A stretch of DNA of 64,000 nt, taken from IMG/VR virus record IMGVR_UViG_3300027770_000025, positions 124,001-188,000 of that record; one strand, 5' to 3'. Numbering within the stretch: the stretch's first letter is position 1; each line of letters starts with the position of its first letter. The notes beneath the pieces are model-generated. The model made no database searches and had not been told where the DNA came from. It was given only the letters and a program-made list of their open reading frames with translations. Made by a program: the position numbers and the translations under genes. Shown piece by piece: positions 1,002 through 62,311 of this stretch.

Positions 1002-1445
1002 TTAGAAAACTGGTATAATAGCCCAAGGTTCTGCAGGGAGCCAATATTGTGCATCATCTATAACCTTTTGCATTTGCTGTACATTTATAGTATTTCTCCA
1101 GTTAGGAGTTTTATTTTTATTTAACCCTATATTAAACCCTGTCATACCAACCCATTTTTTGAGATACTCTTTTGTTGGCATAACTTTTTTATAAGATAAT
1201 TTTCCATCCTTATATCCCATAATATAAATCTCTTCATACAAATTAGTCATATAAACAGGTATCCCTGGCTTATTTCCGACCTTCATTCTGGATAATTCCT
1301 GAACATATTTAACCGGCATAAGAAAAACATAGCTTTTATCTTCTCTATCTTTCTGAGGATTACCCTTAATAAAAACCCATCCTCCCTGTGTCCATGGTAG
1401 GGTGCCTTCATTTAGCCAGATTTGATATTCTAGTAAGTTTTCCAC
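1002..1445 (-). CDS. Hypothetical, probable internal head protein
   Basis: N-terminus MENLLEYQIWLNE; GATATATA 4 nt upstream. Confidence 0.7.
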   Translation of the reverse strand: MENLLEYQIWLNEGTLPWTQGGWVFIKGNPQKDREDKSYVFLMPVKYVQELSRMKVGNKPGIPVYMTNLYEEIYIMGYKDGKLSYKKVMPTKEYLKKWVGMTGFNIGLNKNKTPNWRNTINVQQMQKVIDDAQYWLPAEPWAIIPVF

Positions 1446-1449
1446 ACCT

Positions 1450-1500
1450 TATATATCAAATCTATAAGATATATATAATGTAAAAAAAAACAGATATATA
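1450..1500. promoter_or_regulatory. Divergent GATATATA putative late promoters
   Basis: Motif on - at 1450-1457 and on + at 1468-1475 and 1493-1500, between divergent genes. Confidence 0.6.
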
Positions 1501-1514
1501 AAAATAAATACAAA

Positions 1515-1985
1515 ATGGAAAACATATTAGAATTTGAAACGTTTAATCCTCAAGCTACAGGATCTGCTCCAGCAGGAGTTGAAGTAGCACCTCCGGTTTT
1601 TGGTAATATAGATTTTACCATGTCGGGAGTATCTGATGATGCTATGAAGCTTATTGCAGGACTTATGGCTCAATCGGTATTAGCATCAGGTGAAGCTGAA
1701 AGAATAGCTAGAATGGCAGATACAGACCCAGCTTCGGCAGCGTCTTATCTACAAAAGAAGGTGGAAGGGATCTTAATTGGAGTTCCGGGATTAGCTCCTA
1801 CATTTATTCAGTCTATGAAATCTCAATCTTCAAATATTTCTAAGATTATGGTTCAAACAATTCCAGGATTACTTGGTAGCTTAACAGATAAAGATATTGA
1901 AGCAAACGAATTAAAACCAGATACATCTAAAGCATCTTTCCTAAGTAAACTTAGCGGATTTTTTGCTGACAATCAGGGAGCATAA
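1515..1985 (+). CDS. Hypothetical, probable internal head protein
   Basis: N-terminus MENILEFETF; late motif upstream. Confidence 0.7.
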   Translation: MENILEFETFNPQATGSAPAGVEVAPPVFGNIDFTMSGVSDDAMKLIAGLMAQSVLASGEAERIARMADTDPASAASYLQKKVEGILIGVPGLAPTFIQSMKSQSSNISKIMVQTIPGLLGSLTDKDIEANELKPDTSKASFLSKLSGFFADNQGA

Positions 1986-1990
1986 TCACT

Positions 1991-2560
1991 ATGAGGTCTA
2001 TAACACCATTTGATAATTTTAAAGCTACCATTAACGAGGAAACTGCGGTTAATCTGGTTGGCTATACTAAGAGTGATGTTGAAACCGCATTCCGTAGTAT
2101 AGAAGATGATCTTAGTGATTATTATTCTATTGATGAGGGTAACACGAGTATATCCCTTGAATGGGATGTGAAGTATGGATCATCACTTGAGGTTGAATGC
2201 TTGATTAATAGTATTGAATTTGATTTTAATCATTCAGGATTCTCCGGAGCTCTTATGAGAAACTTATCGCAGGATCCAGATTCAACAGGACCTAGATTCA
2301 GCAAGTCTGAAATAGAAAGAGCAATAGGGGAAGTACATTATAATGCAGTATTCCAGGAGAATATTGATGTAGATTCAAGGGATTTTTCTACCAGTATATC
2401 CGTGGATCAGGATAGGAATTCAACCGAGCTTACAGTTACCGGAGAAATAGATGAAGACTCTGTTGATTTATCTGATGCTGATATAGATACGGATGAAATA
2501 TTGGAGAAAATAACGGAAGAACTCTACCGAGGTGTTTCTAGAAGAATTGATTATGCATAA
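1991..2560 (+). CDS. Very acidic hypothetical, probable internal head protein
   Basis: MRSITPFDNFKATINEE; D/E-rich. Confidence 0.7.
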   Translation: MRSITPFDNFKATINEETAVNLVGYTKSDVETAFRSIEDDLSDYYSIDEGNTSISLEWDVKYGSSLEVECLINSIEFDFNHSGFSGALMRNLSQDPDSTGPRFSKSEIERAIGEVHYNAVFQENIDVDSRDFSTSISVDQDRNSTELTVTGEIDEDSVDLSDADIDTDEILEKITEELYRGVSRRIDYA

Positions 2561-2573
2561 TAATAATAACAAT

Positions 2574-3383
2574 ATGAAAAGAATTAAATTATTTGAATCA
2601 TTTATAAAAGAGACTGCAATAGATCTACCGGATCCAAGCACAGCTGGTGAAGTTTTTTCTGGCGTGTTAGCAGGAAATAGAAATGCTAAGGAAGAACCAA
2701 AAGGTTCTAATACAGGATCAATGGTTAACCAATACCTATCTTCGGTTGGTCTCAAACCAGGATTACCCTGGTGTGCAGCCTTTGTTTATTATATCTTCGA
2801 TCAGGTTACTAGAAGGCTTCGCGTAAAAAATCAACTCCCTAAAACTGGCGGTGTAATGAATATGTGGAAAGGATCAGACCCGTCACTAAAAATAGATATA
2901 AAAGATGCTAAAGCAAATCCATCTCTTATAAGACCAGGTCAGATATTTATTATGTCTAGACCGGGCAAGGGATTAGGTCACACAGGAATAGTTATAGGTG
3001 TTGATGTCAATAAAAGGGAATTCATAACGATAGAGGGTAATACTAACGACCAGCAGTCTGGCGAGGGTGATAGAGTAGGAGTTAACAGAAGAAAACTTGA
3101 TAAATTACCTCTCCTTGGATTTATAGATTTTTTCAGAAATAACAGAACCCCTGAATTTGAGAAAGATATTATGTCTATGATAGACGGGAATAAACCGCCT
3201 TTATCACCTTTAGATGCTATACCCACGGATGCAGTTGTTAGTGGGTATGAAGAGGGCCCAACTCAGATTAAATCAAAACCAGCGGGATTCATGGCTAAGA
3301 TATTAGCTAACTTAGCAAATACTACTAGCGGGAAATTAGCAGATGCCGACGAGATACAGGCTCAGATGGATAAGCTTAAGTAA
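2574..3383 (+). CDS. CHAP-domain peptidoglycan amidase/peptidase with capsid-targeting-like N-terminus
   Basis: PWCAAFV, GHTGIV, TIEGNT motifs; start MKRIKLFESFIKE at 2574. Confidence 0.85.
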   Translation: MKRIKLFESFIKETAIDLPDPSTAGEVFSGVLAGNRNAKEEPKGSNTGSMVNQYLSSVGLKPGLPWCAAFVYYIFDQVTRRLRVKNQLPKTGGVMNMWKGSDPSLKIDIKDAKANPSLIRPGQIFIMSRPGKGLGHTGIVIGVDVNKREFITIEGNTNDQQSGEGDRVGVNRRKLDKLPLLGFIDFFRNNRTPEFEKDIMSMIDGNKPPLSPLDAIPTDAVVSGYEEGPTQIKSKPAGFMAKILANLANTTSGKLADADEIQAQMDKLK

Positions 3384-3820: not shown

Positions 3821-3823
3821 ATC

Positions 3824-7390: not shown

Positions 7391-7789
7391 TTATGAAAAT
7401 TTCATACGATCTTTAGCACTAAAATATTTAGGGTCTATTTCTTTTTCTAAGCTGAATTCTATTCTCTGAACATTGCCGTTCGGCGAAAATTGCCAATCTA
7501 TTTTAGTTCCGAATTCTTCAGAAATGATTTCTGCGATGTCGTCTATGTAGTAGGATATTCTTTGTGGGATTCTTCCATCGAAAGACTTTGGCCAGTATTC
7601 GATAACAAATTTTTCAGGGTCATCAACATCTACAAAATCTACGTCCATTAATCTGGAGTTGAAATGAGATATAATATCCTTCTTAGAAAGCTCAACCATT
7701 TTTGATAGAAGCTCTATACCTTCTTCACCCTCTTGTTTAGCACTATCCGATGGCAAGTTCCAGAGTTCATATAGTTTAATGTTCTTCAT
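7391..7789 (-). CDS. Hypothetical, probable internal head protein
   Basis: MKNIKLYELWN N-terminus. Confidence 0.7.
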   Translation of the reverse strand: MKNIKLYELWNLPSDSAKQEGEEGIELLSKMVELSKKDIISHFNSRLMDVDFVDVDDPEKFVIEYWPKSFDGRIPQRISYYIDDIAEIISEEFGTKIDWQFSPNGNVQRIEFSLEKEIDPKYFSAKDRMKFS

Positions 7790-8580
7790 TAGATACCCTT
7801 TAATATTCTAGATGATCTAAGGTATGCTCTGATGACCTTAACCACATCTGTTTCTTCCATTTTTTCTAGCCCTCTTATGATGGAATCTAAAGTATCCCTG
7901 TCCTCGATATCGGAAATGGTGCTTAAAATTGTTTTATCTGATGCGTATATTTCTGCTATAATAGATCCAAGATTTTCCCCCATAGATTCGGGTGATTCCC
8001 CTTTATAGAAGAATGAATCTACCGCATTTTTATAGCTTTCGAGTACTTTCTTTTTCAATGAAGGTTTTAATGAATCCGGCAGATTCTTTTTACCTACCTG
8101 AACCATTACTCTAACTTTCTTGATTTCCCCTATGACCTCTTCGATAGCTTTATTTACTATCGTAACCACCTGATCTTTATTATCAGCGTTAAAATCTATA
8201 TGAAATTCTCTGAACTTAGCTTTATGGGAAGATGACTCAGATGCTATTATGTCCATTAGATATTTCCCATTACCCATTTTTTTATCTCTAACAAAAGTTA
8301 TCCTCATCTTAGATGTTTCGAAATAATGGGGAATGAATTCTATCTCTGATTTTTCTAGAGCATCAAAGTACTCCTTGAGTGATCCAGATAATATGTCAAT
8401 AGAAAATTTATGTGCGTATACATTTGATGAAAATGCAGTGCTCAGTCCTTTTTCTTTGAGACCCTCCGCAATTTTACAGTTCTTCTGAATATACTCAAGA
8501 TCATTCTCGGTTACTCTGTATTCCTCAGGAGTTTCCGATTCAGATAGCCAATTTTTATATTTCAGTAGGGAATTCTGCAT
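7789..8580 (-). CDS. Hypothetical, probable internal head protein
   Basis: MQNSLLKYKNWLSE; GATATATA 4 nt upstream (8585-8592). Confidence 0.75.
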   Translation of the reverse strand: MQNSLLKYKNWLSESETPEEYRVTENDLEYIQKNCKIAEGLKEKGLSTAFSSNVYAHKFSIDILSGSLKEYFDALEKSEIEFIPHYFETSKMRITFVRDKKMGNGKYLMDIIASESSSHKAKFREFHIDFNADNKDQVVTIVNKAIEEVIGEIKKVRVMVQVGKKNLPDSLKPSLKKKVLESYKNAVDSFFYKGESPESMGENLGSIIAEIYASDKTILSTISDIEDRDTLDSIIRGLEKMEETDVVKVIRAYLRSSRILKGI

Positions 8581-9067: not shown

Positions 9068-9571
9068 ATGCGTTACTTAATTATTTTAATTCTATTTATC
9101 CCTTTTACTTCTTTAGCCCAAATAAAAACTGATAAGGCTGGGGATTTCTGGGATCTTAAAGTAGATTCAGCCCTAAATAAGATAAAGTTGATCGACTCTG
9201 TTTATTATAGTCGCATTCTTCAGGTTTGTGACACTGTTTCATTCTGGACAGGAAATTTTTCTAGCTGTTATGGTGGTTATGCAAAAAGAGGAACTATAAT
9301 TATCTCGTCTAAAGATATGAGATCCAATGATATAGATGATATTTGTGCTGTTCTCGTTCATGAGTCTCTTCATCTAAAAATATTAATGATGGGTATGGAA
9401 ATGAATGATAATAACGAGGAAGCATTATGTTATGCTTATGAGAAGCTATTTCTATTAAAGGTACCCGGGGTTAATGAATACCTTATAAAACACGCAGATG
9501 ATATGATTTTTATAATGGAGGCTAAAGGAAATCTATTTCCTCAATATCTCCCAGATCATATCCAGCATTAA
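9068..9571 (+). CDS. Secreted zincin-like metallopeptidase
   Basis: Signal peptide; VHESLH (HExxH) with downstream EEALCY. Confidence 0.6.
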   Translation: MRYLIILILFIPFTSLAQIKTDKAGDFWDLKVDSALNKIKLIDSVYYSRILQVCDTVSFWTGNFSSCYGGYAKRGTIIISSKDMRSNDIDDICAVLVHESLHLKILMMGMEMNDNNEEALCYAYEKLFLLKVPGVNEYLIKHADDMIFIMEAKGNLFPQYLPDHIQH

Positions 9572-10166
9572 AGCTTCCCTCAGCGCTAACTGACATGGAG
9601 TAGTTTTGAGAATCTGATGTTTCATAACTATCAAATATTAATGTTGTCATTTCATCATCTCTATATGTGTCAGCGTGCTCAAATTTCCCGGTAACCATAT
9701 TCTTGCCATTCCAGAATAACATCTCTATGTGGTTCTCGTTAAAATCATTGAAAGTTATTTCTCTCATTCTGGACTTATCCAGAACGTCATAAGAAAATAT
9801 TCCTTTGTGTATGTTAACGCATGACTTATATCTCATAAAGTTAGACATAATGGTGAAAGTCAGTCCATATTCAAAATTATCAAAGGGATTTGAGTAATCT
9901 ATATTGCTGACAGACATTAGAGCTTTTAGAGTTCTTTCATCTGAAGTTGGAAAGAACTCAACTTCATAATTCTTTTCTTTTAGAAACTGGACTAGTTCTA
10001 TGATTTTTTCGGCAGGATAATTCTTTCCTATATTTGCCGTATAGTTTGAAGAGTATCTTCGTCTGTTTTTGAAAATATCAACTGTTCCCAAAAATTCAGC
10101 AATCTCAAGGGCTAGATCTTCCTCCTTAGGATACGTAAATTCCTCGTACAGTTTAAGATTTTTCAT
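9522..10166 (-). CDS. Hypothetical, probable internal head protein
   Basis: MKNLKLYEEF; GATATATA 4 nt upstream (10171-10178). Confidence 0.75.
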   Translation of the reverse strand: MKNLKLYEEFTYPKEEDLALEIAEFLGTVDIFKNRRRYSSNYTANIGKNYPAEKIIELVQFLKEKNYEVEFFPTSDERTLKALMSVSNIDYSNPFDNFEYGLTFTIMSNFMRYKSCVNIHKGIFSYDVLDKSRMREITFNDFNENHIEMLFWNGKNMVTGKFEHADTYRDDEMTTLIFDSYETSDSQNYSMSVSAEGSFNAGYDLGDIEEIDFL

Positions 10167-13225: not shown

Positions 13226-14311
13226 ATGACTAATATATTAGATTTTACATCCTTTATTAACGAAGCTGAAAATGTTTACTCTGGAGGAGGCGATCCATAT
13301 TCATATAAGGTGATTAACGGGGAATGGTGGACAAAAGGTCCTCAGATTCCAAATTGGAAAAGTATAGGTGACAACGTAAGAGCCACCCAGATACTAGATA
13401 CAAGATATCCAGGTACAAGAGGAAATGTGGGTATTCCAAATCCTACCCAAGTTTCATCTATATACCAAAGCAATACATCTAATCAATATAATCCGCAAAC
13501 ATCAGCTATAACTCAGACATCTAAGGACATTATGGTTTGTTCCCATGCTGCTAGATGGGATGGCCCAGGGGGAACGAAAGTTTTTAACTCAATTAAGAAT
13601 TTTGAACTAAATGTTAAGAACGGGACAGATATGATAGAAGTTGATATTCAGATCACAGCAGACGGTGTTCCTGTTTTATATCACGACGGAACATTGGATG
13701 CTAGAACTTCAGCTAAAGGTAAAATTCAGAATAAAAATTGGGCCGAGGTAAAGAACATATCATACGACGAGGATCCTAAAGAGAAGATACCTTCATTAGC
13801 AGAAGCAGTTAGAATACTCAAAACTAGCAATAAAACTAAATTACAGTTGGATAAGTGTGATGCTTCAGAGCTTGCTATTATTCACAAATTAGGTCTACTT
13901 AAAGGTATAGAGAACAGAGTTATTGCGAAGGGAACTTCGTACACCCCACCGGCGATAATTAGAAGTATGGGAATCCAATGGATGCCAATAATACCCGGAA
14001 ATATGGTTGGTTCTATAACGGATCAAAAAAATGCAGATTCCGTTGTTGCTAAATGCTCTCCGGGATATCTTGAATATCAATTTAGCGATTCAGATACTTA
14101 TGTAACTAATGGGTATCTTTCAGATGCTCTAAGAGCTAGAGGCGTTATGCCTTTAGTTGTAGCTGTAGGCGGAACAGATAAGACCAACGGAAAATCTTTC
14201 AGAGGAGACGGAGATTCTGCATGGAATAAAATGATAACACAGATTAATCCTAGTGTTATTATGACAAATAGCCCAAAGAGATTAAGAGATAAAATAAATT
14301 CTACCAGATAA
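13226..14311 (+). CDS. Glycerophosphodiester phosphodiesterase (GDPD) domain protein with capsid-targeting-like N-terminus
   Basis: GTDMIEVDIQITADGVPVLYHDGTLD; MTNILDFTSFINE; GATATATA at 13212-13219. Confidence 0.8.
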   Translation: MTNILDFTSFINEAENVYSGGGDPYSYKVINGEWWTKGPQIPNWKSIGDNVRATQILDTRYPGTRGNVGIPNPTQVSSIYQSNTSNQYNPQTSAITQTSKDIMVCSHAARWDGPGGTKVFNSIKNFELNVKNGTDMIEVDIQITADGVPVLYHDGTLDARTSAKGKIQNKNWAEVKNISYDEDPKEKIPSLAEAVRILKTSNKTKLQLDKCDASELAIIHKLGLLKGIENRVIAKGTSYTPPAIIRSMGIQWMPIIPGNMVGSITDQKNADSVVAKCSPGYLEYQFSDSDTYVTNGYLSDALRARGVMPLVVAVGGTDKTNGKSFRGDGDSAWNKMITQINPSVIMTNSPKRLRDKINSTR

Positions 14312-23898: not shown

Positions 23899-24498
23899 TT
23901 AAGCTACATTAACGTTTTCTGGCTTAGATTTAGCCGTTAAATCGTTTTTGGAATAAAAATATGTTTTCCCAGCATAATTCCAGAAAAAAGCATTGTTACT
24001 TTTGTTACTTTGTCTCTCTATGGGTTTAGCTGCTCCACCACTTTTTGGTTTATCAGCTAAAAACTCAGTTCTAGACTGAACGTGTTTACCCGCTTCGTTG
24101 GATAGTTTTACGTCCTTTTGAGCCAATATGGAGTTGTTGATAGCAAGGGTAGCTTTATTTCTATCTACTTTCTTTGTTTTCATGTATACTATTATAGCCT
24201 TGTCCTTGGAGTTTATTGAATTCCAATCCGCTCCTCTCTTCTTTCCAATGCTAACAGGCTCATATTGGCCTTTATAAAGAATTATTTCCTTAATTGTTTT
24301 TCCGTAAGGTTTCTTAGGAACTGCTAATCTATTATAAATCGATTGTGCTGTATCTGCCATAGCCTGCTTTTGATCTGAAAAATTCTCACATGCCATTATA
24401 GTTATTAAAGTCCAATACTCCGAATTATCTATTGCACCTGGTGTATTAGACTTCTCGTTGAGTTCGTTAAATTGATTAAATTCTAATACATTTATCAT
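23899..24498 (-). CDS. SleB/Hydrolase_2-like cell wall hydrolase with capsid-targeting-like N-terminus
   Basis: ACE..MADTAQSIYNR..YGKTIKEIILYKGQYEP; start MINVLEFNQFNELNE at 24498. Confidence 0.65.
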   Translation of the reverse strand: MINVLEFNQFNELNEKSNTPGAIDNSEYWTLITIMACENFSDQKQAMADTAQSIYNRLAVPKKPYGKTIKEIILYKGQYEPVSIGKKRGADWNSINSKDKAIIVYMKTKKVDRNKATLAINNSILAQKDVKLSNEAGKHVQSRTEFLADKPKSGGAAKPIERQSNKSNNAFFWNYAGKTYFYSKNDLTAKSKPENVNVA

Positions 24499-26757: not shown

Positions 26758-27759
26758 TTATTCTGTCTTTTTATCCTCTGTGCTAGCTGGTGTTTCTGTG
26801 CTAGTATCGGGAGTTGGAGAGGAAGAAGTTGGCTGAGGAGTAGGTGCTGGCTGTTCTGGTTTACCTGGTGCTGGTTTACCTCCGGGTTTACCTGGTGCTG
26901 GTTTAGCTCCTGGTTTACCTGGTGCTGGTTTACCTGGTGCTGGTTTACCTGGTGCTGGTTTACCTGGTGCTGGTTTAGTTGATTTGTAGTTACCTTCTTT
27001 ATTTAGTATTTCACTAAAATCTTTATTCTGTTTCAAAATAGATTCTCTAGCTACCTTACGAACTAAATATAAGCTACCGAGTGTTTGTCCAACTTGTTTG
27101 GATAATAAAACAGATGGATCTGCTTTAACCGAAGCAATCAATTTCTGGAGTGAATTCACATAAATTGCAGAGATCGTCTTCATCTGTTGACTTGCTGCAA
27201 GTTCTTTTCTAAATTCTGCAGGATTATTTCCTGCTTTTTTCATAGAATCTGCTATTCCCTTACTTACTGATATTAATAGGCCGTTTACCTTGGGATCTAC
27301 TGATTCCTGACCCATTCCTTTAGAGATCTTACCTGTAATTGATGAGATAAAAGATTTTATCTTGCCCATTAAGTCAGAGCTGTCGTTCTTTCCCTCATTT
27401 AACCCTTCGTCCAATCCTTCTTCTAAACAGGCTTGATCTAGGAAATCCCATTCGGGTAGATTTTCTTTTTCGTGAACTCTTGATTCTACGAATTTTGTGA
27501 ATTTAATTATGTTGTTCATATTTTCTGGTTTTTTTTCTTCGCTTAATTTTTGATTTGGCTGCATAACAGGAGAGTTCTGAAGCCATTTAGAAATACCTAA
27601 AGTTTTAGCTGCCGCTCTCTCGTGATATGCCTTATGAGGAAATGCTCCACATGTTGGGCATTCTTTTTCACTGTCTTCTATGCTTTTTCCGCAACCAGAA
27701 CAAACGTCCTGTCTTTTTCTTTCTGTTACGAATTGGGTTATTTGTTTTAGTTGCTTCAT
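26758..27759 (-). CDS. Probable internal head protein with Zn ribbon and PAPGK repeats
   Basis: MKQLKQITQFVTE; CSGC..CPTC; second motif MNNIIKFTKFVE; Pro-rich tail. Confidence 0.75.
   Translation of the reverse strand: MKQLKQITQFVTERKRQDVCSGCGKSIEDSEKECPTCGAFPHKAYHERAAAKTLGISKWLQNSPVMQPNQKLSEEKKPENMNNIIKFTKFVESRVHEKENLPEWDFLDQACLEEGLDEGLNEGKNDSSDLMGKIKSFISSITGKISKGMGQESVDPKVNGLLISVSKGIADSMKKAGNNPAEFRKELAASQQMKTISAIYVNSLQKLIASVKADPSVLLSKQVGQTLGSLYLVRKVARESILKQNKDFSEILNKEGNYKSTKPAPGKPAPGKPAPGKPAPGKPGAKPAPGKPGGKPAPGKPEQPAPTPQPTSSSPTPDTSTETPASTEDKKTE
26857..26976 (-). repeat. 15-bp coding tandem repeat (TGGTTTACCTGGTGC on +, PAPGK)
   Basis: Four perfect units at 26911-26970 plus degenerate copies. 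Confidence 0.95.
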
Positions 27760-27760: not shown

Positions 27761-29005
27761 TTATACGTATCTTAATGCTTTAGAAACATTGATCAATCTC
27801 TTAGTTAATCCGTCGATGTCTTCGATCTTAGTTGCCATATCAACATACTGATTCATCTTATCGTTTCCTGAGATTAGACTCTTAATTGACATTGATCCCT
27901 CCTTTAGGAGATATTTAATTAGAATAGCTTTAGCGTTCTCGTGTACTGCTGTTGTGTCGTGTTCTTTATCGAAGAAAACAGTTTGACTCACATCCGCTGA
28001 TGCATCATGAAAATAGTTTGCAAGAAGGCCGTTAAGTTCTTCCATTGTTTCTTTATCTTCTGCCGATGCTCTCCATCCAGGTATTACTAATTTCTCGTCT
28101 AGAGATTTACCCTTTGCTCTTTTAAAAGTTCTTTTTGCAATAGCAATAAAAATGGCGTTAAACATCTCGACGTCTTCCAACCTACATCTTAGAGTGTTTT
28201 CACCTGTTCTAAAATTAACGGAGTTGATAGGCATTCTTTGTGTGTTGGTAACTGTCCAAGTTTCGTAATCTGTTTTGGTAATCATTTGACCGTGTGTATC
28301 ACCACCTACTAGATCTTTAATTAGATCTCCATAAAGTTGTTTAGCTCTTTCTAAAGCTCTCAGGTAGAAATAGTACTTAACTTTACCGCCTTTAGAAATG
28401 TCTCTCACTAAACTAACCCTTCCGCTGCTAGAATATCTGACACTCTTACCAACGAAGTCAAGTTCAACCAACCTTTGCATTGTTGCAAGCTGAAGTAACT
28501 CGTCGTTATTAGGATGAGCTAATTGATCTCCTCCCATCATAGGTTTTAGCCTTTCCCTAATCTGATCAAGGGTAAGTTCTTCACCTGCAGGATACATCTC
28601 ATCAAAATCAACTTTCTCGTTAACGTCTCTCTTGCTTATAAGTGAAGCTGGAATTCCGTTTTTAACAATTCTAAGCCAGATGTGTCTGAAAAGTTCTTGT
28701 GGGGTATCAAAACTAGCAAATCCATATGTTTCTAATCCAGGTTTACTTGAGTAGTGTTCGCAACAGTAATTACCATCATCATCAACAAACATGGAGGTTT
28801 TAGGCATTGAGCTTCCTCTGATTTCTAATCTAATCTTCTGATCATCTATTCTCTGAACGGTTACATTTAACCCTCTTTTAAGGTCTCTCGCAGAAGGTAG
28901 ATTGCTGTCAAAAGAATCTATTAATTCTCTTCCTGGAGGATTGAGCCAGTTTTTACTCCAATAAGCTTCCCCGATAAACTCGGAGTAATTTGAAACTTTT
29001 TCCAT
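27761..29005 (-). CDS. Hypothetical, probable internal head protein
   Basis: MEKVSNYSEFIGE; 414-aa ORF. Confidence 0.75.
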   Translation of the reverse strand: MEKVSNYSEFIGEAYWSKNWLNPPGRELIDSFDSNLPSARDLKRGLNVTVQRIDDQKIRLEIRGSSMPKTSMFVDDDGNYCCEHYSSKPGLETYGFASFDTPQELFRHIWLRIVKNGIPASLISKRDVNEKVDFDEMYPAGEELTLDQIRERLKPMMGGDQLAHPNNDELLQLATMQRLVELDFVGKSVRYSSSGRVSLVRDISKGGKVKYYFYLRALERAKQLYGDLIKDLVGGDTHGQMITKTDYETWTVTNTQRMPINSVNFRTGENTLRCRLEDVEMFNAIFIAIAKRTFKRAKGKSLDEKLVIPGWRASAEDKETMEELNGLLANYFHDASADVSQTVFFDKEHDTTAVHENAKAILIKYLLKEGSMSIKSLISGNDKMNQYVDMATKIEDIDGLTKRLINVSKALRYV

Positions 29006-29006: not shown

Positions 29007-30548
29007 TTATAATTTAGATTTAATTCTTTTAGCTATATTTTGCTCTTCTCTAACCACGTTTTTCATGCTTTCGACTTGGGTAGGCTTTAATGGAAGATTT
29101 CCTTCTGCATTAAGATCCAAAACGTACTTAATCTCTTCGATACCCTTTTCTGTTGCCTTTAATATATCTTCGATATCAGCTTTAGTGTAATCATCACCAA
29201 TAAGTCTATTGAATACATTTAGAGTTGCCTCACTGAAGATACCATATTGTTTAAACTCGTTCATGAAGTCACTTTTCTTAAGACCTTTAACATCATAGAT
29301 GATCTGAGCAACCAATCCTGAGATCTTCTCCCAGTCTTCCTGTGGCATAGCACCAGCTAAGAAACCTTTTGATGTTGCTATAAGGGATTCAATAATGTTT
29401 CTAATAGTAAGACCTGTTCCGTCTCGGTAATATCTTTCAAGAGCGATCTTGATATCACACTCCATTTTGAACTTTGACATAACAGTATCAACCAGATCCT
29501 TAGGGTAATCGAGTCCTTCTAAAACATCTTTTAGCGTTTTGAACGTGTTATTGTTTTTATCCCTTAGTCTATTGTTAGGTCTTGTGGCATCAGTGTGGAT
29601 TGATCCGTCTTGGTTAACCGTGACACCAATTAAGCTGTGTATATCAGTAACGGGAACGTTTGAGTTAATGATATTGATCTGTACCCTTCCCCCGTTATAG
29701 GACCAGAATGTTGAATCTGTTCTAATACACCAGTTGGTATCTGCACATATTGCTCTTTGGGCTTCCGGTGTTCTTGCGGATTCCACGATGTAACCGTCCT
29801 TAGCATAAAGAATACCTGCCATTGGACCTAGATCCTTAAGCTTCTTAAGTAATCCGGACTCGTCTTGGCTCCAGCCTTCAATAAATTCTAATGCGTCCTT
29901 AATAATATCAGCGAAAGCCACCTTTTCATCTCTGTATTCAGGATAAGTTCTGGTGTCTTCGTATTTCTTTAGTCCTTTGGTGAATTCTTTCCAAGCAATT
30001 TTTCCGTCTTTATCTTTTAGTTGTTCTAATTGGTTGGAGATTTCGGTAAGGTCATCAATTTGTTTGTCCGTTGCTTTTGCGAAAACCTTTCTCATTTTAC
30101 CTGTTAACTCACCGTAAAACTTTTTTAGTTTTCTTTTTCTCTCGATATTTCTAAGGTCGTCACCCAAAACTTCATATCCTGGACGGATGTCGTCTTCCGT
30201 AGGTTCAACTTTAGCGTAATCATTAATGTTCATAGACAAATCCTGTCCTAGGGTTTGTTTATATTTCATTAGATTATCGAAAATCTCCTTTAGTTCCTCC
30301 ATGTGAGCTTTCTGATCGAATCTGAATTTTACGAACATTGGGGTGTAGCCAGGGAATTTTTCTGTTAAATCCTTAACCTCTTTAAATTTTGGATCTGCTA
30401 GGATCTTTTTCTTTGTTTCTTCACCGATTTCAGATGTTTTTATCTTCTTTTCTAAAGCATATCTCTTTAAAAGATAGTCCTTAGCAGCTTGGACATTTTC
30501 TAACAGAGCTTGTTTCTCTGAAAATGTTGGGAAACTATATTTCATCAT
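29007..30548 (-). CDS. Large hypothetical protein (possible PcfJ-like WC motif)
   Basis: Probable start MMKYSFPTFSE at 30548; ICADTNWCIRTDSTFWSY. Confidence 0.7.
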   Translation of the reverse strand: MMKYSFPTFSEKQALLENVQAAKDYLLKRYALEKKIKTSEIGEETKKKILADPKFKEVKDLTEKFPGYTPMFVKFRFDQKAHMEELKEIFDNLMKYKQTLGQDLSMNINDYAKVEPTEDDIRPGYEVLGDDLRNIERKRKLKKFYGELTGKMRKVFAKATDKQIDDLTEISNQLEQLKDKDGKIAWKEFTKGLKKYEDTRTYPEYRDEKVAFADIIKDALEFIEGWSQDESGLLKKLKDLGPMAGILYAKDGYIVESARTPEAQRAICADTNWCIRTDSTFWSYNGGRVQINIINSNVPVTDIHSLIGVTVNQDGSIHTDATRPNNRLRDKNNNTFKTLKDVLEGLDYPKDLVDTVMSKFKMECDIKIALERYYRDGTGLTIRNIIESLIATSKGFLAGAMPQEDWEKISGLVAQIIYDVKGLKKSDFMNEFKQYGIFSEATLNVFNRLIGDDYTKADIEDILKATEKGIEEIKYVLDLNAEGNLPLKPTQVESMKNVVREEQNIAKRIKSKL

Positions 30549-32369: not shown

Positions 32370-33675
32370 TGAAGCAGATCAATTAAACGAAGGAGAAACA
32401 ACAGGTTACGCAGGTAAGTTATCTGCTATTCTATCTGGAGGTATGAAACTCCAAGGACAGAATAAGACTTTTACCGAAACTCTAGTTACTGAATATCTTA
32501 ACAAATATTACAATGCTAGCGTGCCAGGAACTAAGGAGATGGCAGATACGCTAATACAAGTCTTAAGTGATGCTTTTGATACGCTTAACAATAAAGTAAT
32601 AAGAACTACACCTGGTGTTGTCTCAAAAACAATACTACCAACAACTTACGAATATTTAACCGACGGTGTGGTTAAAGCGGAAGGACATTGTAATCTAGAG
32701 ACTACTTTTGAATACACCGGCTATGATGATAAGGGAAATTTACAAGGAGGTCTAGAAGGTAGTTACACAATTGGAGATAGAGTAGATGAAACACAAACGT
32801 TACCCTTGTCATATCTTTTAGCAGCTGTTAATGCTCATAATTTTAACGCATTTGCAGAACTGGTTGACATGGCAGCGGGATATAAAAAAGGGGATACTAT
32901 AGTAAATTATGGGGACAAAGCCGATCTGAAGGGGTATCTAAAATGGTCTACTGGAACAAGTAATGAGAATAAAAGATTTTTCCAAATGGATTCCGAATCT
33001 CTTGGTGGTAATATCATTCAATTTACTGATTACAAACCTAAAGGAACCGCACCTGGTTGGGGATGGCAATTCCCTATTTACGTAGCTTCTTTTATTACCG
33101 CAGGTGGGGGTAGTCTTGTAGATGCTTCAACGTATGACGAAGTTATTCAGCCAGCAGGAAATTCGGTAGAGGTTTCTGAAAAGGAATATAATGCTCCACC
33201 CGAAGCTAAATTCTTTGACGCAAACGAGGTAACAATCTCTGAAGATGGTAAAGCATCATTAAATGCTATACTTTCCTCATTTAACTCTATTGATAAAATT
33301 TTAGTTAACGGTGGTGCTTCAAGCTCAAAAACTGATAGAGAAGGAGGAAACGAACAACTTGCTAAAGATAGACAAGCAGCTGGTATTACAGAATTAAATG
33401 CTCTTAAAGAATCAGGAGTACTTCAACTTAAAGATACAGTAATTGAAGCGGGAACAGCTAAAGTTCAGGATGCAGCAGAAAAAAGTGATCCTACAAAACA
33501 GCAAGTTTCTTTTATTATTTCAGGTAAGATTAAATCAACTAAAGTTGTAGAAACCAAACCAGTTACAATTCAAAGGGTTGAGACGATAAAAGGAGATGCT
33601 GTTCAATTTACTGAATACGTATTTAACATTATGGTTAATGCAGAGCCTAACACTAAAACTCTAACAGAAGCTTAA
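32302..33675 (+). CDS. Probable virion protein with degenerate OmpA-like C-terminal domain (cassette 1)
   Basis: KPVFESFNEFIKFIYE; FDANEVTISEDGKASLNAIL..ILVNGGAS..GNEQLAKDR. Confidence 0.65.
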   Translation: MKNNMKNNKPVFESFNEFIKFIYEADQLNEGETTGYAGKLSAILSGGMKLQGQNKTFTETLVTEYLNKYYNASVPGTKEMADTLIQVLSDAFDTLNNKVIRTTPGVVSKTILPTTYEYLTDGVVKAEGHCNLETTFEYTGYDDKGNLQGGLEGSYTIGDRVDETQTLPLSYLLAAVNAHNFNAFAELVDMAAGYKKGDTIVNYGDKADLKGYLKWSTGTSNENKRFFQMDSESLGGNIIQFTDYKPKGTAPGWGWQFPIYVASFITAGGGSLVDASTYDEVIQPAGNSVEVSEKEYNAPPEAKFFDANEVTISEDGKASLNAILSSFNSIDKILVNGGASSSKTDREGGNEQLAKDRQAAGITELNALKESGVLQLKDTVIEAGTAKVQDAAEKSDPTKQQVSFIISGKIKSTKVVETKPVTIQRVETIKGDAVQFTEYVFNIMVNAEPNTKTLTEA

Positions 33676-34474: not shown

Positions 34475-34568
34475 AGATAGATATATAGTAAAACTAATAA
34501 ATAACAAATAACATGACAAACAATAAACCAGTATTTGAGAGCTTTAATGAATTCATTAAGTTCATTTA
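34475..34568 (+). repeat. Copy 2 of late promoter + targeting-peptide head
   Basis: See 32271-32369. Confidence 0.95.
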
Positions 34569-35751
34569 CAGCGATGCAATTTACGAATCGGTAAAAATCG
34601 AAAATCTTTCCGACTTGCAAAGAACCCTAGGAAGCTTGGGTATGGATAAAGTAGGAAAAAATGCACTGACCGAGATTGAAAGCTTAGCAGAGCAATCTGG
34701 GGCTATATTTTCTGCAGCGGATCTAAGCCAAATTGGGGTAGTCCTAGGAAAGTTAACAATCCCTGACGTAATCTCTATTACAGATGTAAATGTAGATGTA
34801 GAAAAATTCTACTACGACAATTTAATGGGCGGAGCGGTTAAAACACAAAAGGGTGATAAAGTAGGTCTTGCCCAATTCTTAACCCAAGCAAATAAGGAGA
34901 ATTTAAAACCTTTGAGTGGAAAGATCCCAAATATAAACCTAAAGAAGAAGAAGTTTGATTTAGACGAGAATGGAAAATTTGTACCAGGATCAGGTTTAAT
35001 TGGCCAATATTTACCGGTTCAGATAGAGGGTACACTAGATCTGAAGAAATGGAAATTTGATGACCCTGTTAAGAATTCTGTGATTGCTTTACCAGATTAT
35101 GATCCTTCGGGAACAAGTATTAGTTCCAGCGAACCAGTATCTAAGGAAACTCGAGCATATATGTACGGCGAAATACATGTTGCGTATGTGCTTTATCATC
35201 CAACCTTTGTAGGTAATAATGGTCAGCCATACACATCTAAAAAGGTGGAAACATACGTTCGTCCAGTACCTACAGTTACGGAGAAATTAAACCCTATCGT
35301 TGTTCAAGAAGAGCTTCCGCTTTTCGTAGTAAATACTGCAAATCTAACGGAAGAAGGAAAAATTGCAATCATGCAAGCACTATCAAACGTAACAACAGCT
35401 AAATCTATTTCAATCAGAGGCGGTGCTTCTCAAGAAGGAACTCCGGAAAGAAATAAGGAACTTTGTAAACTACGATCTGAAGCAGTGGCTGAATTTCTTA
35501 AACCTACTTTCCCTGATGCTGCTATCACTGCAGAAGCAGAAGGTGAGATACAACCTAAAACACCAGATACAGACGAGAAAACAAGAAAAACTTTCAGAAA
35601 GATAATTATGGACGTTGATGGTACAACATTGGTTAAACAGCCAGGAACAAAGGATGAAACTATTACAACAATTAACACCGTTAGCAAGAGAGCACAAAAG
35701 GTTACTATTGCAGCAACTATAATTACTATAACCGCTAAGTTTAATGAATAA
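34513..35751 (+). CDS. Probable virion protein with OmpA-like C-terminal domain (cassette 2)
   Basis: FVVNTANLTEEGK..ISIRGGASQEGTPERNKELCKLRSEAVAEFL..GEIQP matches the OmpA_C pattern. Confidence 0.75.
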   Translation: MTNNKPVFESFNEFIKFIYSDAIYESVKIENLSDLQRTLGSLGMDKVGKNALTEIESLAEQSGAIFSAADLSQIGVVLGKLTIPDVISITDVNVDVEKFYYDNLMGGAVKTQKGDKVGLAQFLTQANKENLKPLSGKIPNINLKKKKFDLDENGKFVPGSGLIGQYLPVQIEGTLDLKKWKFDDPVKNSVIALPDYDPSGTSISSSEPVSKETRAYMYGEIHVAYVLYHPTFVGNNGQPYTSKKVETYVRPVPTVTEKLNPIVVQEELPLFVVNTANLTEEGKIAIMQALSNVTTAKSISIRGGASQEGTPERNKELCKLRSEAVAEFLKPTFPDAAITAEAEGEIQPKTPDTDEKTRKTFRKIIMDVDGTTLVKQPGTKDETITTINTVSKRAQKVTIAATIITITAKFNE

Positions 35752-46811: not shown

Positions 46812-48242
46812 TTATCGTTTATATTTCCTTGCTAATTCCTGTGCATGATTCAAGTCCCTAACACCAAATTTCTGGGATTGCTGCAAATACCCATCAGCAA
46901 ATGATCTAGGCTTATTTAAAGCCATTGAATTCCATCCATTATAATTTGTACTGTATTTCCAAATCTGGTCTGTAGTTGCTATAGATCCATTAGGTCTTTC
47001 CGTGTATAAATAACCACCTACATTACCTCCTGTTCGATCTGCTCCATGAGCGCAGTGTACTAATGTGTTACCACTTTTAATAATTTCATTTACCTTGTCC
47101 TGATCTCTAGTAGATGAAAGCTTATAGAATTTACATCCTAGCTGTTTACATAATGCTTCCTCTTCTGCGATTGAAACAGATTGATCTTTTCTTTGATGTC
47201 TTCCATCCTTTCCATCCCCGTTAAATCGTATAACATTCTTTATTCCGTATTTAGGGTACATCTGTTTCATTACCTCGAGAGGAAATTGTGCACTTCTGTA
47301 ATTTGTTCCCTTTCCGTCAGGAATCAAATGAAAATTATACTCTCTAGAAATAGCTGCATCATCCTGTTCTGGATTAGTCCCCACCACAGCAGGAGTAAAT
47401 ATTATATTGTTATTAGGTATCGGAGATTGGTTATTAACTATCTGAGATGTATTATTGGCATCTGCGCCAGATTTCTTAGGAGCATTCTTAGACCTCATGT
47501 TTGGGTTTTCGCTATCCAATGTGTCAATGGAAATCTGATAAGCTGGATTAAAATCTGCTCCAGTTAGCTCATACCATCTTGATTGACTATCTTTTTTAGC
47601 TAACCAATGATCGCCTTCTACCTTATATTTATAAGGATCCTTCGGTCTAGAAATAATTTGACTCGCTGTAGAGTTTCCTTTACTTAGATCTGTTGGTGGA
47701 ATGTATCCAGATTGGTTTGTTACCAACCCGTCAATTTCCTTTGCTATAGTATCATATACAGGTAGATTAACATGGGGGTTTGTTACTTTCCCGATTGGTG
47801 GTTCAATAACGGTAACGCCTTCACCTTTAAATCTGTCATAGTATTGCTTAACCTTATCAGTGGTTACTGATACATTTCCGCCCCAACCCCATGATCCCTG
47901 AACAACAGACAATTTTGCCTGCGGAAAAACTCTTCTTAATTCAGAAACTAGACCTTTGATGTCGTCATTGGGGCTAAATCCCCCATTCGTTCCGATGTTT
48001 ATTACAACATCTTTAACTTTAGTGTCAACTGGATGCTTAGAAACAGCCCCATTCAGCCATTTAACGCCCATTCCACTTTTCCATAAGTTTTCTTCCGATC
48101 CAGTAGTTCCTAACATTGTAAGGGTCTTGGATCTCCTGAATATGTTTGGAGTACAAGAATCACCTATTACGATGCTTGTCCCATCACTTTTAGACTCGTT
48201 TAAACTTATAAAAGATTTAAAATCATGTATTCTATTTTTCAT
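46812..48242 (-). CDS. Multidomain probable virion protein: SGNH-like + linker module + Cys-based (CX5R) phosphatase
   Basis: MKNRIHDFKSFISLNE; IGDS and IGTNG blocks; VHCAHGADRTG; GATATATA 4 nt upstream. Confidence 0.75.
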   Translation of the reverse strand: MKNRIHDFKSFISLNESKSDGTSIVIGDSCTPNIFRRSKTLTMLGTTGSEENLWKSGMGVKWLNGAVSKHPVDTKVKDVVINIGTNGGFSPNDDIKGLVSELRRVFPQAKLSVVQGSWGWGGNVSVTTDKVKQYYDRFKGEGVTVIEPPIGKVTNPHVNLPVYDTIAKEIDGLVTNQSGYIPPTDLSKGNSTASQIISRPKDPYKYKVEGDHWLAKKDSQSRWYELTGADFNPAYQISIDTLDSENPNMRSKNAPKKSGADANNTSQIVNNQSPIPNNNIIFTPAVVGTNPEQDDAAISREYNFHLIPDGKGTNYRSAQFPLEVMKQMYPKYGIKNVIRFNGDGKDGRHQRKDQSVSIAEEEALCKQLGCKFYKLSSTRDQDKVNEIIKSGNTLVHCAHGADRTGGNVGGYLYTERPNGSIATTDQIWKYSTNYNGWNSMALNKPRSFADGYLQQSQKFGVRDLNHAQELARKYKR

Positions 48243-60505: not shown

Positions 60506-60510
60506 TTCTA

Positions 60511-60542
60511 CAAATATAATGTTTGACTACGTATTAAAAAAA
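60511..60542 (-). promoter_or_regulatory. Early promoter copy
   Basis: TTTTTTTAATACG-N11-TATATTTG. Confidence 0.7.
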
Positions 60543-61193
60543 TTAAATAGCGGATTCTTTTAAACTTTTTATCTGAGCTTCGTATAGCTTATTCTTATCC
60601 TCAAGCAAGATAAGATTGCTTCTTGTATTTTTCCAGTAGTAGTAGAACTTGTCGCAAAGTTTTTTTGTTAGTTCAATCTTTTCTTTGTGTAGGAATCTAG
60701 GCTCCTTTATAGTAGTGACCACACCATAGGAACTTACGTACATTAACCCTGCATAATCAGGAACTTCCTCCTTTTTAATTAGACCCTCGGGTACGCAATA
60801 ATAGAATTTATTGGGTCTAAATTTCCATTCTATCGGGCCATAGTAATGTTCAGATATCTTTTTCTTTGTTACTGAATCAGTATGATATCTATACTTCTTT
60901 TTCATATAGACACCTTCGTTTAGTATCCTGTGTTTGTTAGTTTTTTTGAAATCATTTAAGAAATCACCTCTGCTAATTTTTATTTCTATCTCATAGCAGT
61001 ATCCACTTTTCTGAACTACTAGAAAATCGGTTTCCCAGTCATCTTTGAAAAGATAAAGATTCCCTGCGGTGTACTTTATATTTCCGCTGTCAAATCTTTT
61101 TTCTAAATTATTCTGGATTGTTTTTTCTGTGTGTTTTTTATCTAGCATTTCTAATTTTTTAATCCCACCACCCGCGAAGACCTGTTCCGTCAA
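60543..61193 (-). CDS. PD-(D/E)xK nuclease-like protein (MmcB-like)
   Basis: ETDFLVV..YEIEIKISRGDFLND; NKFYYCVP..VPDYAGL. Confidence 0.7.
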   Translation of the reverse strand: MTEQVFAGGGIKKLEMLDKKHTEKTIQNNLEKRFDSGNIKYTAGNLYLFKDDWETDFLVVQKSGYCYEIEIKISRGDFLNDFKKTNKHRILNEGVYMKKKYRYHTDSVTKKKISEHYYGPIEWKFRPNKFYYCVPEGLIKKEEVPDYAGLMYVSSYGVVTTIKEPRFLHKEKIELTKKLCDKFYYYWKNTRSNLILLEDKNKLYEAQIKSLKESAI

Positions 61194-61815
61194 ACCATTT
61201 ATAATAATGATCCTCGTCTTTGTGCTCTTCTTCGGTTAGTGATTCTAATATTTTTTGATATTCCCTGCGATCCTGGCCCTCTATAATTCTCCATAGCTCT
61301 TTCCATTCCTCTTGAGCTATTTCATGGGATCTTTCAAACACCTTTCTGTTGTGAGCTTTCTCCTCTTCAGTTTCTTTATCAATCAATTTAGAATATCCTG
61401 GCTTATCATCAACAGCTTCGAATTCCCAATCGTGGTTTATAATCTCCCCTAATTCTGCCTCAGCCATTTCGATATACAGATCCTCGTTATAGTTCCGCAT
61501 AAGCTCCGCAGCTCTCTTCATCGCTTTAACTTTTTTTAGTCTGCTGATGTCAACCTCGTGGCCATGTTTTTCCATTTTGTCTCCCATATCAGAAATCCCT
61601 ATTTCCATGAATTTAAGTAAAGAGTGATGATCCCACCAGTAGTGATTTGCTAGAGGCTTTCTGAATTTCCAAACATTTTTCAGAAATCTTGGAATGTCGT
61701 ATCTGAAAAGTGAGTAGGTTTTATACCACCATGTATTGTGTCTTATTAATCTTTTGATGCTATCGCCAAATGTGTCTGCAAACTCTACTTTCATAAAAAA
61801 TGGTTTGTTTTTCAT
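61159..61815 (-). CDS. Hypothetical phage protein
   Basis: 218-aa ORF ending in GWWD. Confidence 0.7.
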   Translation of the reverse strand: MKNKPFFMKVEFADTFGDSIKRLIRHNTWWYKTYSLFRYDIPRFLKNVWKFRKPLANHYWWDHHSLLKFMEIGISDMGDKMEKHGHEVDISRLKKVKAMKRAAELMRNYNEDLYIEMAEAELGEIINHDWEFEAVDDKPGYSKLIDKETEEEKAHNRKVFERSHEIAQEEWKELWRIIEGQDRREYQKILESLTEEEHKDEDHYYKWFDGTGLRGWWD

Positions 61816-61840
61816 AGATTATGATCAATACAAAGTTCCA

Positions 61841-61872
61841 CAAAAAAAGCCAGATAAACTATATCTGGCTTT
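61841..61872 (-). terminator. Intrinsic terminator
   Basis: GCCAGATA/TATCTGGC stem followed by T7 on -. Confidence 0.75.
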
Positions 61873-61891
61873 AAATATTATAGATTTTTAA

Positions 61892-62311
61892 TTATTCCTC
61901 ATCTTCCTCATCTTCATCTTCCTCGCCTTCTTCTTTCTCCCCATCTTCAACTTCTGGTTTTTCGTCGTCTTCAACTTCAACCTCTATGTTTTCCGGTTCG
62001 AATAATTCTTCTCCTGATTCTTCTGATGATCCTTCACCTTCAATTTCGTTTCTGATCCAATCAGCAACTTCTTGAATATCGTCTTTAGATGTAGCAATAT
62101 GATCAGCAGCCCAATCGTGACCATTCTTAAGATGATTATCGACTTCTTCTGGATCCATTTTAAGAATCTCTTCTATGTAATGTTTAATGGAAGTTAAGTT
62201 CGCAAAAAACATGTAATGCTGTTTCTCCTGACCTCCATCCATGTGGTTGTCGTCTTCCACTATTTCCGTAGCTTTTTTCTTGAAGTCGTCAAATGATACT
62301 ATTCTTTCCAT
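61892..62311 (-). CDS. Acidic protein, probable internal head protein
   Basis: MERIVSFDDF; DWAADHIATSKDDIQEV; GATATATA at 62334-62341. Confidence 0.72.
   Translation of the reverse strand: MERIVSFDDFKKKATEIVEDDNHMDGGQEKQHYMFFANLTSIKHYIEEILKMDPEEVDNHLKNGHDWAADHIATSKDDIQEVADWIRNEIEGEGSSEESGEELFEPENIEVEVEDDEKPEVEDGEKEEGEEDEDEEDEE

Follow-up and report, generated by a model that had tools for sequence, protein, structure and literature searches.

Bacteriophage T4 uses a short N-terminal capsid-targeting sequence (CTS), processed by the prohead protease gp21 and hitherto known as serving a handful of internal proteins (IPI, IPII, IPIII and Alt). The first 10 residues of IPIII are enough for packaging, residues 4 and 7 of the CTS act in targeting while residues 8 and 10 direct processing, and gp21 cleaves after L/I-X-E (PMC9026906); a conserved tag on fluid cargo has already been described for the internal proteins of T-even phages (PMC3012670). 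The element considered here, referred to below as the tag, is a peptide of about 13-20 residues at the N-terminus of proteins encoded in a 64,000-nucleotide stretch of DNA (the window), which corresponds to bases 124,001-188,000 of one 348,582-bp contig from an uncultivated phage (IMG/VR virus record IMGVR_UViG_3300027770_000025; GC content 35%; completeness 100% by CheckV). Similar to the CTS, the tag has two aromatic residues three positions apart, followed by I/L-x-E and a small residue, it stands on otherwise unrelated, fast-evolving proteins, and it occurs in a genome with gp23-, gp20- and gp21-type head genes. The two systems differ in the position of the aromatics (4 and 7 in T4, 7 and 10 here), in the number of carriers (a handful in T4, about 53 here, known from sequence alone) and in the cargo, which here includes complete housekeeping-type and cell-wall enzymes and nothing homologous to the T4 internal proteins; the host, too, is probably a different one, a member of the Bacteroidota. 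We believe, with a probability of roughly 0.72, that the shared peptide is a T4-type capsid (prohead-core) targeting and processing signal on most of its carriers, a reading that a first-pass annotation of the window had proposed and that every in silico test we ran appears to favour.

Phage P1 loads its anti-host Dar proteins into the capsid by dedicated assembly signals and delivers them with the DNA. This loading follows an ordered protein-protein hierarchy (Hdf, DarA) and does not depend on a single short, portable consensus peptide. Both the SLT-domain protein gp16 of T7 and the ejection proteins of P22 lie inside the head, act on the envelope at ejection and provide a precedent for the SLT, CHAP and peptidoglycan-binding cargo described below; they are few, conserved core components, and we know of no cleavable targeting tag on them. 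In the phiKZ-like giant phages (phiKZ, 201phi2-1 and SPN3US), which have tens of head proteins (about 50 or more) of which 8-19 are processed, a gp21-related protease (gp175/gp245) cuts after Glu, and N-terminal propeptides are thought to target the prohead (PMC5694885, PMC9026906). Most of these propeptides exceed 100 residues; they share no short consensus, and their cut motif is S/A-x-E (PMC5694885), whereas the genome studied here has a consensus tag of 13-17 residues, an [ILV]-x-E motif and a protease that scores better against S77 than against S80, and is not of the phiKZ type. Our literature search found no paper on short consensus targeting tags in either huge phages or phages of Bacteroidota. 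The device itself, a CTS together with gp21, is already known; what is new is a tag three residues longer, its presence on about 12% of the genes and throughout a clade, and enzyme cargo not found in T4.

First, we found that the N-termini quoted in the first-pass annotation (18 of 18) translate exactly as written; for minus-strand open reading frames (ORFs) that annotation had given the stop end as the coordinate, hence the peptide lies at the high-coordinate end. In a mechanical set of 430 ORFs genome-wide, with internal methionines as the control, the simple pattern M-x5-[FYW]-x2-[FYW] occurs at 34 of 430 first starts and at 19 of 1,663 internal methionines (Fisher p 3e-12), so the motif is indeed commoner at N-termini than in the control, and the frequency of aromatics is raised at residues 7 and 10 only. 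An iterated position matrix (score >=6-8) flagged 53-55 ORFs as against 4-5 of 1,576 internal methionines, and the identical pipeline, applied to the 261 ORFs of T4 at a matching GC content (35.3%), flagged none. After removal of false positives about 53 genes carry the tag, roughly 12% of the genome's genes, the window's share being 13 robust carriers and 5 weaker variants. The earlier count of about 19 ORFs therefore stands as regards the individual N-termini but falls well short of the whole set, and one member, at 26758, is doubtful. The consensus reads M-[KE]-[NH..]-[ILV]-[KL]-x-[FY]-[EN..]-x-[FYW], usually followed by [ILV]-x-E↓[AGST] (here and below the arrow marks the putative cut), with F or Y at position 7 and F, Y or W at position 10 in 43 of 43 training tags. 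A chance or composition artefact of an AT-rich genome would explain the common MK start and nothing more; we give it next to no credence in view of the internal-methionine controls, the empty T4 result at equal GC, and a hidden Markov model (HMM) of the tag that had 0 matches in three Bacteroidota phages, namely Tenacibaculum phage PTm1 (E <= 10), Flavobacterium phage MaF61 and Lak-A1 (both E <= 1), or in T4 (E <= 10), these genomes measuring 168-542 kb. The false positives of the matrix are a phage ClpP encoded just upstream of the window (genome 123253-123936; PF00574, 1.5e-56) and a membrane protein (genome 208816-209127). The window ORF 20408-20842, which starts MKTYNLFLDD with T4-like spacing, is likewise not a tag carrier: these residues form the opening strand of a conserved domain, and homologs start differently.

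Second, the tag resembles the T4 CTS in its core and in what follows it. Circularity was avoided by redefining the tag on residues 1-10 alone, which gave 46 tagged ORFs and 384 others. At residues 11-20, [ILV]xE[AGST] is present in 22 of these 46 and 30 of these 384 (p 8e-11), and the sharper [ILV]NE in 14 and 10, respectively; common tag ends are FIKE↓T, FINE↓A, WLNE↓G, SLNE↓S and FIGE↓A, and in 14 of the window's 18 ORFs an [ILVMFY]xE site ends somewhere from residue 11 to residue 26. Of the pattern aromatic-x-x-aromatic-hydrophobic-x-E, as originally formulated for the window, the aromatics peak at 7 and 10, and a clear cut site within 20 residues is present in only about half to two thirds of the tags. 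The T4 N-termini, read from NC_000866, bear out the sequence used for comparison: IPII and IPIII start MKTYQEFIAE↓A, IPI starts MKTFKEF...ITE↓A and Alt starts MELITELFDE↓D. The spacing of the tag is that of MKTYQEFIAE↓A plus three residues in front, and the counterparts of CTS residues 4, 7, 8 and 10 are residues 7, 10, 11 and 13. A core model of 7 residues, from aromatic to Glu, was trained on this genome and the uncultured phage LR756500.1 only; when applied to 274 T4 ORF N-termini, it ranked IPIII 1st, IPII 2nd and IPI 10th. Rank 3 fell to T4 gp61.1 (a 54-aa annotated hypothetical protein; NC_000866 18966-19130, minus strand), which starts MKTFKEFIKE↓D and may, judging by this start, be an unrecognised CTS-bearing T4 protein.

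The cut-site-like [ILV]xE motif after many tags would also suit a peptide that is a protease substrate only, either a removable inhibitory propeptide on late enzymes or a ClpP degron that times their removal, with no loading into the head. The phage has its own ClpP gene just upstream of the window, and several cargo proteins are lytic enzymes (CHAP, SLT) that possibly need restraint. We nevertheless regard this explanation as unlikely because the most conserved part of the tag, its aromatic pair, corresponds to T4 positions 4 and 7, which serve targeting and not processing (PMC9026906). In addition, the aromatic pair is retained in tags without a nearby cut site, and a scaffold-like protein encoded beside the capsid gene carries the tag.

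Third, the genome encodes T4-type head genes, namely a gp23-family capsid protein (PF07068, 1.6e-40), Portal_T4 (PF07230, 7e-68) and a gp21-type S77 protease, with PHROG matches to major head protein, portal and head maturation protease; tail sheath and large terminase genes are also encoded. The protease forms the N-terminus of a 654-aa protein, where it matches Peptidase_S77 (T4 gp21) and the PHROG 'head maturation protease', and has a long C-terminal region fused to it. Its PF03420 score is 31.1 bits against a cut-off of 27, and it exceeds the gathering scores of both Peptidase_S77 and S80, S77 being the better match (31.1 vs 24.7 bits). The capsid protein of the clade starts MKLINEQEIYETWSPLIE↓S and has, about 42 residues in and ahead of the gp23 domain, a clade-invariant HSLNE↓SAG (IINE↓S in the PTm1 capsid protein); with this SLNE↓S site, the best-known type of substrate of the protease shares its motif with the tags. 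The next gene after that of the capsid protein (genome 299324-300472) encodes a tagged protein of 382 aa that looks scaffold-like, being K/E-rich and predicted to consist of long helices throughout, and that is probably, on this prediction, the scaffold or a major core protein. Near residue 42 there is a second invariant site, VNE↓G, and among 28 distinct orthologs entropy is 0.68 at residues 1-10 as against 1.8-1.9 at residues 11-40. At genome 316048-319281, on the minus strand, lie two paralogous portal genes of the T4 type in tandem; their products, 537 and 536 aa long, both match PHROG 213, and the 537-aa protein, the one run against Pfam, matches PF07230 too.

Fourth, tagged genes have an upstream motif in common with head and tail genes. 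The sequence GATATATA, strongly over-represented upstream in the form GATATATA[AG], has 77 copies over both strands, 58 of which lie within 60 nucleotides (nt) upstream of a start and in sense orientation; T4 has 3 copies. It precedes the head protease, one portal gene and the tail sheath, as well as five genes (baseplate, fibre) from the tail/baseplate block. In agreement with the co-occurrence envisaged in the first-pass annotation, it stands directly before 32 of 55 tagged and 29 of 375 untagged genes (p 3e-17), about 8 of these 29 being weaker tag variants, and same-strand units headed by it contain 46 of 55 tagged and 138 of 375 untagged genes. We infer from these positions that GATATATA is a putative late promoter element. 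A sigma factor of 119 aa with region 2 only, the architecture of gp55, is encoded among the structural genes (genome 320414-320773). Two more sigma-70-family genes lie at genome 327546-328178 and 70285-71199, and a genome scan for the sigma-70 consensus was at chance (52 sites vs 51.6 expected). The copies of GATATATA in the window are:

1450-1457, minus strand, first of three divergent, late-promoter-like copies between the tagged ORFs 1002 and 1515
1468-1475, plus strand, second of these copies
1493-1500, plus strand, third of these copies
8585-8592, minus strand, ahead of ORF 7789
10171-10178, minus strand, ahead of ORF 9522
13212-13219, plus strand, ahead of ORF 13226
24592-24599, minus strand, further copy
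30569-30576, plus strand, ahead of ORF 30597
32276-32283, plus strand, ahead of ORF 32302
34480-34487, plus strand, ahead of ORF 34513
38022-38029, plus strand, further copy
44663-44670, plus strand, further copy
48247-48254, minus strand, ahead of ORF 46812
62334-62341, minus strand, ahead of ORF 61892

The end of GATATATA lies 4-7 nt before the start codon in 17 genes and mostly 14-32 nt before it in the remainder, and with a gap of 4-7 nt the late mRNAs of those 17 genes would be leaderless or nearly so. This spacing could point to a mobile promoter-plus-leader cassette, or to a translation-initiation constraint on leaderless or Shine-Dalgarno-less late mRNAs, with no role for the peptide as such; Shine-Dalgarno-like sites are present at only 6% of the ORFs, as against 43% in T4, and residues 2-5 of the tag are encoded by A-rich codons. 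We hold this to be very improbable. Positions 7 and 10 are encoded by a mixture of TTT, TTC, TAT, TAC and TGG, and the hydrophobic residue at position 4 (Ile, Leu or Val) by at least six codons; since synonymous codons vary at the tag positions, selection acts at the amino-acid level. Moreover, upstream DNA between tagged genes is 32% identical (ungapped), 23 tagged genes have no GATATATA directly upstream, and a relative with 24% GC has the same peptide.

The carriers in the window are given below with window coordinates, N-terminal peptide and matrix score; the orthologs mentioned are those of the related genome G001, whose capsid protein is 79% identical. The robust carriers are:

1002..1445, minus strand, tagged ORF of 147 aa with a GTG start; MENLLEYQIWLNE↓G; score 19.7; without a Pfam family; GATATATA 4 nt upstream
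1515..1985, plus strand, tagged ORF of 156 aa; MENILEFETF; score 24.3; no [ILV]xE site nearby; without a Pfam family
1991..2560, plus strand, tagged ORF of 189 aa; MRSITPFDNFKATINE↓E; score 11.3; in a late unit shared with 1515
2574..3383, plus strand, tagged ORF of 269 aa; MKRIKLFESFIKE↓T, retained in the ortholog as MEKLKSFSEFLAE↓A; score 21.8; cargo a CHAP peptidoglycan-hydrolase domain (PF05257, 5e-9)
7391..7789, minus strand, tagged ORF of 132 aa; MKNIKLYELW; score 21.9; ortholog tagged
7789..8580, minus strand, tagged ORF of 263 aa; MQNSLLKYKNWLSE↓S; score 7.9; aromatic pair at 8 and 11
9522..10166, minus strand, tagged ORF of 214 aa; MKNLKLYEEF; score 21.7
13226..14311, plus strand, tagged ORF of 361 aa; MTNILDFTSFINE↓A; score 19.7; cargo a GDPYxYKV module, then a glycerophosphodiester phosphodiesterase (GDPD; PF03009, 1.8e-16)
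23899..24498, minus strand, tagged ORF of 199 aa from an internal ATG; MINVLEFNQFNELNE↓K; score 15.1; weak match to a cell-wall hydrolase family (PF07486, 5e-4, under the curated cut-off)
27761..29005, minus strand, tagged ORF of 414 aa; MEKVSNYSEFIGE↓A; score 13.8; no family by Pfam or PHROGs and no usable match in a protein atlas look-up
30853..32271, plus strand, tagged ORF of 472 aa; MNLKSFTQLVDE↓A; score 11.2; hydrophobic pair at Phe 6 and Leu 9, a residue ahead of the usual place; ortholog starts MIKSFKEKLEE↓A
46812..48242, minus strand, tagged ORF of 476 aa; MKNRIHDFKSFISLNE↓S; score 9.5
61892..62311, minus strand, tagged ORF of 139 aa; MERIVSFDDFKKKATEIVE↓D; score 16.8; ortholog tagged

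The weaker members are:

26758..27759, minus strand, doubtful member, zinc-ribbon protein of 333 aa; MKQLKQITQFVTE↓R; Ile at position 7; under the matrix threshold
29007..30548, minus strand, variant tag, 513 aa from the ATG at 30548; MMKYSFPTFSE↓K; ortholog retains SFPTF, followed by LIE↓N
30597..30863, plus strand, variant tag on a Pro-rich protein of 88 aa; MKVFTKIEEF; without a cut site
32302..33675, plus strand, variant tag, 457 aa (453 aa if counted from the second ATG, at 32314); MKNNKPVFESFNEFIKFIYE↓A; C-terminal region with weak similarity to OmpA; ortholog not found in G001
34513..35751, plus strand, variant tag, 412 aa; MTNNKPVFESFNEFIKFIYSDAIYE↓S; OmpA-family peptidoglycan-binding domain (PF00691, 1.8e-7); ortholog starts MENKPVFESFSEFLKFAINE↓G

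The variant peptides of 29007, 30597 and 34513 are conserved in their G001 orthologs; in the case of 26758 the peptide is missing from the ortholog, which makes membership doubtful. Directly before the ATG of the CHAP gene, a stretch of Asn codons (window 2532-2573) is shorter by 3 nt in metatranscriptome contigs from a related strain, and this supports 2574 as the real start. Such contigs, from a strain 90-97% similar, cover window positions 632-3593, the tagged cluster, and not 3750-6300, a DNA run being even over both; this gives a weak hint that the tagged cluster is transcribed in nature.

Fifth, the tag is an add-on ahead of complete, unrelated enzyme folds. Once their first 22 residues were removed, the 55 proteins fell into 50 BLASTP clusters, including one 6-member family of paralogs with similarity to leucine-rich repeat (LRR) proteins, all encoded outside the window; within it, the sole related pair is 32302 and 34513, distant paralogs whose first 19 residues are nearly identical while the remainder can hardly be aligned. 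The carriers are thus mostly unrelated, as had been claimed, and descent from a single paralogous family was rejected. Outside the window, Pfam and PHROGs recognise SLT, PG_binding_1, a RimK-type ATP-grasp ligase, an adenylate kinase and the LRR paralogs, and most other cargo proteins have no family in these collections. The adenylate kinase fold begins at residue 24, aligned to residue 2 of the PDB structure, and the RimK-like fold at residue 22, aligned to PDB residue 3. For the 476-aa protein of 46812, an AlphaFold2 model built from 31 homologs gives residues 1-19 a pLDDT below 50, with a short helix at 8-16, and predicts a fold from residue 23 onwards with three domains after the tag, an SGNH-type esterase, a small beta module and a Cys dual-specificity phosphatase fold. 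The model matches SGNH esterases and Cys dual-specificity phosphatases such as TpbA, one further comparison lending weaker support, and tag residues F8 and E16 are invariant in the 31 homologs. A GDPYxYKV..W module, predicted to form two beta hairpins and a helix, is common to the cargo of 13226-14311 and 46812-48242, and in database homologs is paired with beta-lactamase-like, GH24 lysozyme, GDPD or phosphatase domains; this shows that domains are shuffled among the cargo proteins.

The nature of the cargo also bears on where the tag might lead. At least five cargo proteins that act on or bind the cell wall score above the Pfam curated cut-off (CHAP, SLT, PG_binding_1, OmpA-like and GDPD), two more match weakly (Hydrolase_2 and a second OmpA-like domain), and a DnaK-like (Hsp70) gene is present in the ORF list, all of which would be in line with another destination or partner, be it the cell envelope, a phage chaperone such as the encoded Hsp70, or another part of the virion. 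We think this improbable, given that ATP-dependent enzymes (the adenylate kinase and the ATP-grasp ligase) are tagged as well, that the peptide resembles the T4 CTS, and that none of the 39 ORFs of the tail/baseplate block is tagged. Tagged genes are likewise absent from the capsid/protease/portal/terminase/tail-sheath block (47 ORFs) and from the glycosyltransferase block (61 ORFs). Being charged and non-hydrophobic (mean hydrophobicity -0.07), the peptide is also unlike a Sec or lipoprotein signal.

Sixth, the tag has been kept in related phages while its cargo has changed. The tag HMM found the following:

LR756500.1, 462 kb, 23 matches (E <= 10)
LR745206.1, 635 kb, 45 matches (E <= 1)
LR756504.1, 636 kb, 33 matches (E <= 1)
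LR756501.1, 735 kb, 6 matches (E <= 1)
G001-G004, four relatives of 270-434 kb that are 99-100% complete, 19-23 matches each (E <= 0.1)

In LR756500.1 (24% GC, capsid protein 43% identical), a highly uniform MKYIKEYEEF[IL]xE↓A stands on 36 proteins, and homologs are found there for 1 of the 55 tagged proteins, the ClpP false positive, as against 88 of 375 untagged proteins (p 3e-5). In G001, homologs exist for 38 of the 55 tagged proteins; their median identity is 47%, compared with 61% for untagged proteins, and nearly all of these partners are tagged themselves, some with the tag shifted by one or two residues. Distant homologs of 46812-48242 also led to another phage-like contig, 103 kb long (ENA k141_1142882, 34% GC), on which at least eight neighbouring, otherwise different genes have a different recurring N-terminal motif, in the forms MNLQENIxRIKEVM, MSKIIKLTESDLxRLVKRVIKEQ and MKIRLTEEKLVQIITEIVEQ. 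One motif-bearing gene has a phosphatase-like cargo domain in common with 46812, and a search for the motif in PTm1, Lak-A1, MaF61, LR756501 and LR756500 gave nothing; the motif may be a lineage-specific counterpart of the tag.

We envisage that, late in infection, the GATATATA promoter would drive the tagged genes along with the head and tail genes, and that the N-terminal peptide, by its hydrophobic residue at 4 and its aromatics at 7 and 10, would dock the protein to the scaffolding core as the prohead assembles. The prohead protease, of the gp21 family (S77), would then cleave after [ILV]-x-E, in many cases [ILV]-N-E with a small residue next to it, and the mature protein would be freed inside the head and could exit with the DNA at infection. 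Docking, cleavage, head residence and ejection are steps that we infer from the tag and from the head genes of the phage. The carriers would comprise the scaffold-like protein, cell-wall enzymes and binders, the RimK-type ligase, the adenylate kinase, the esterase-phosphatase fusion, the LRR family and many small unknown proteins, and injection of all of them would be somewhat less likely than targeting and processing.

Several observations weigh against a T4-type targeting signal. About 53 packaged kinds of protein would lie far above the handful in T4 and the 8-19 processed proteins of phiKZ-like phages, and for this reason some tagged proteins may not be packaged; an injected adenylate kinase, moreover, has no obvious rationale. 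Roughly a third to a half of the tags have no clear [ILV]xE within 20 residues, and in a minority the first such site lies much deeper in the protein or is absent. The 18-residue tag HMM gives no match in the T4 genome, which we ascribe to the three-residue offset, as the offset-free core model succeeds. The helical hydrophobic moment of the tag is 0.32 compared with 0.28 in controls, and with so marginal an excess we do not claim an amphipathic helix. A complex prediction for the 654-aa protease-scaffold protein with a 72-aa tagged protein scored 0.00; it was run without controls and speaks neither for nor against binding.

Taking the wider view, we would tentatively propose, at slightly less than even odds, that huge T4-related phages from freshwater and elsewhere load at least 50 different proteins into the capsid by means of a short N-terminal 'zip code' and deliver them with their DNA, that these proteins are the fastest-changing part of the genome, and that the zip codes are lineage-specific. 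If so, the sequence of an uncultivated phage would directly reveal which proteins it injects; here these would include cell-wall enzymes, host-modifying enzymes (the RimK-type ligase, kinases and the phosphatase), LRR proteins and dozens of unknowns. The tag is conserved over a clade with more than 200 IMG/VR relatives and in 'huge phages' of 462-636 kb. Provided that the tagged proteins do enter the head, a large part of the 'dark' accessory gene content in huge phages would amount to an arsenal for injection. Such an arsenal would be predictable from sequence alone and would yield candidate anti-defence and host-takeover effectors, and the tag would offer a ready-made means of loading foreign proteins into such capsids.

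As for the phage itself, megablast of the window against deposited phages gave no match. Among deposited capsid proteins, the nearest (43-44% identity) come from LR756500.1, an uncultured phage of 462 kb, and from the Lak megaphages, followed by those of 634-735-kb 'huge phages' and of Tenacibaculum and Flavobacterium phages. Those genomes were assigned by Al-Shayeb et al. to the 'Mahaphage' clade, with hosts predicted to be Bacteroidetes (PMC7162821). The host of the present phage probably belongs to the Bacteroidota, with which the low share of ORFs with Shine-Dalgarno-like sites is in line. IMG/VR contains at least 218 relatives with capsid proteins 69-97% identical, and the window sequence is present, with hardly any change, in 17 metagenome runs on freshwater or lakes, which belong to at least 10 studies between 2017 and 2025. 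The sole tRNA of the window is the following:

58451-58522, minus strand, tRNA-Lys (anticodon TTT)

The Lys codon AAA is also the most frequent second codon of the tag.

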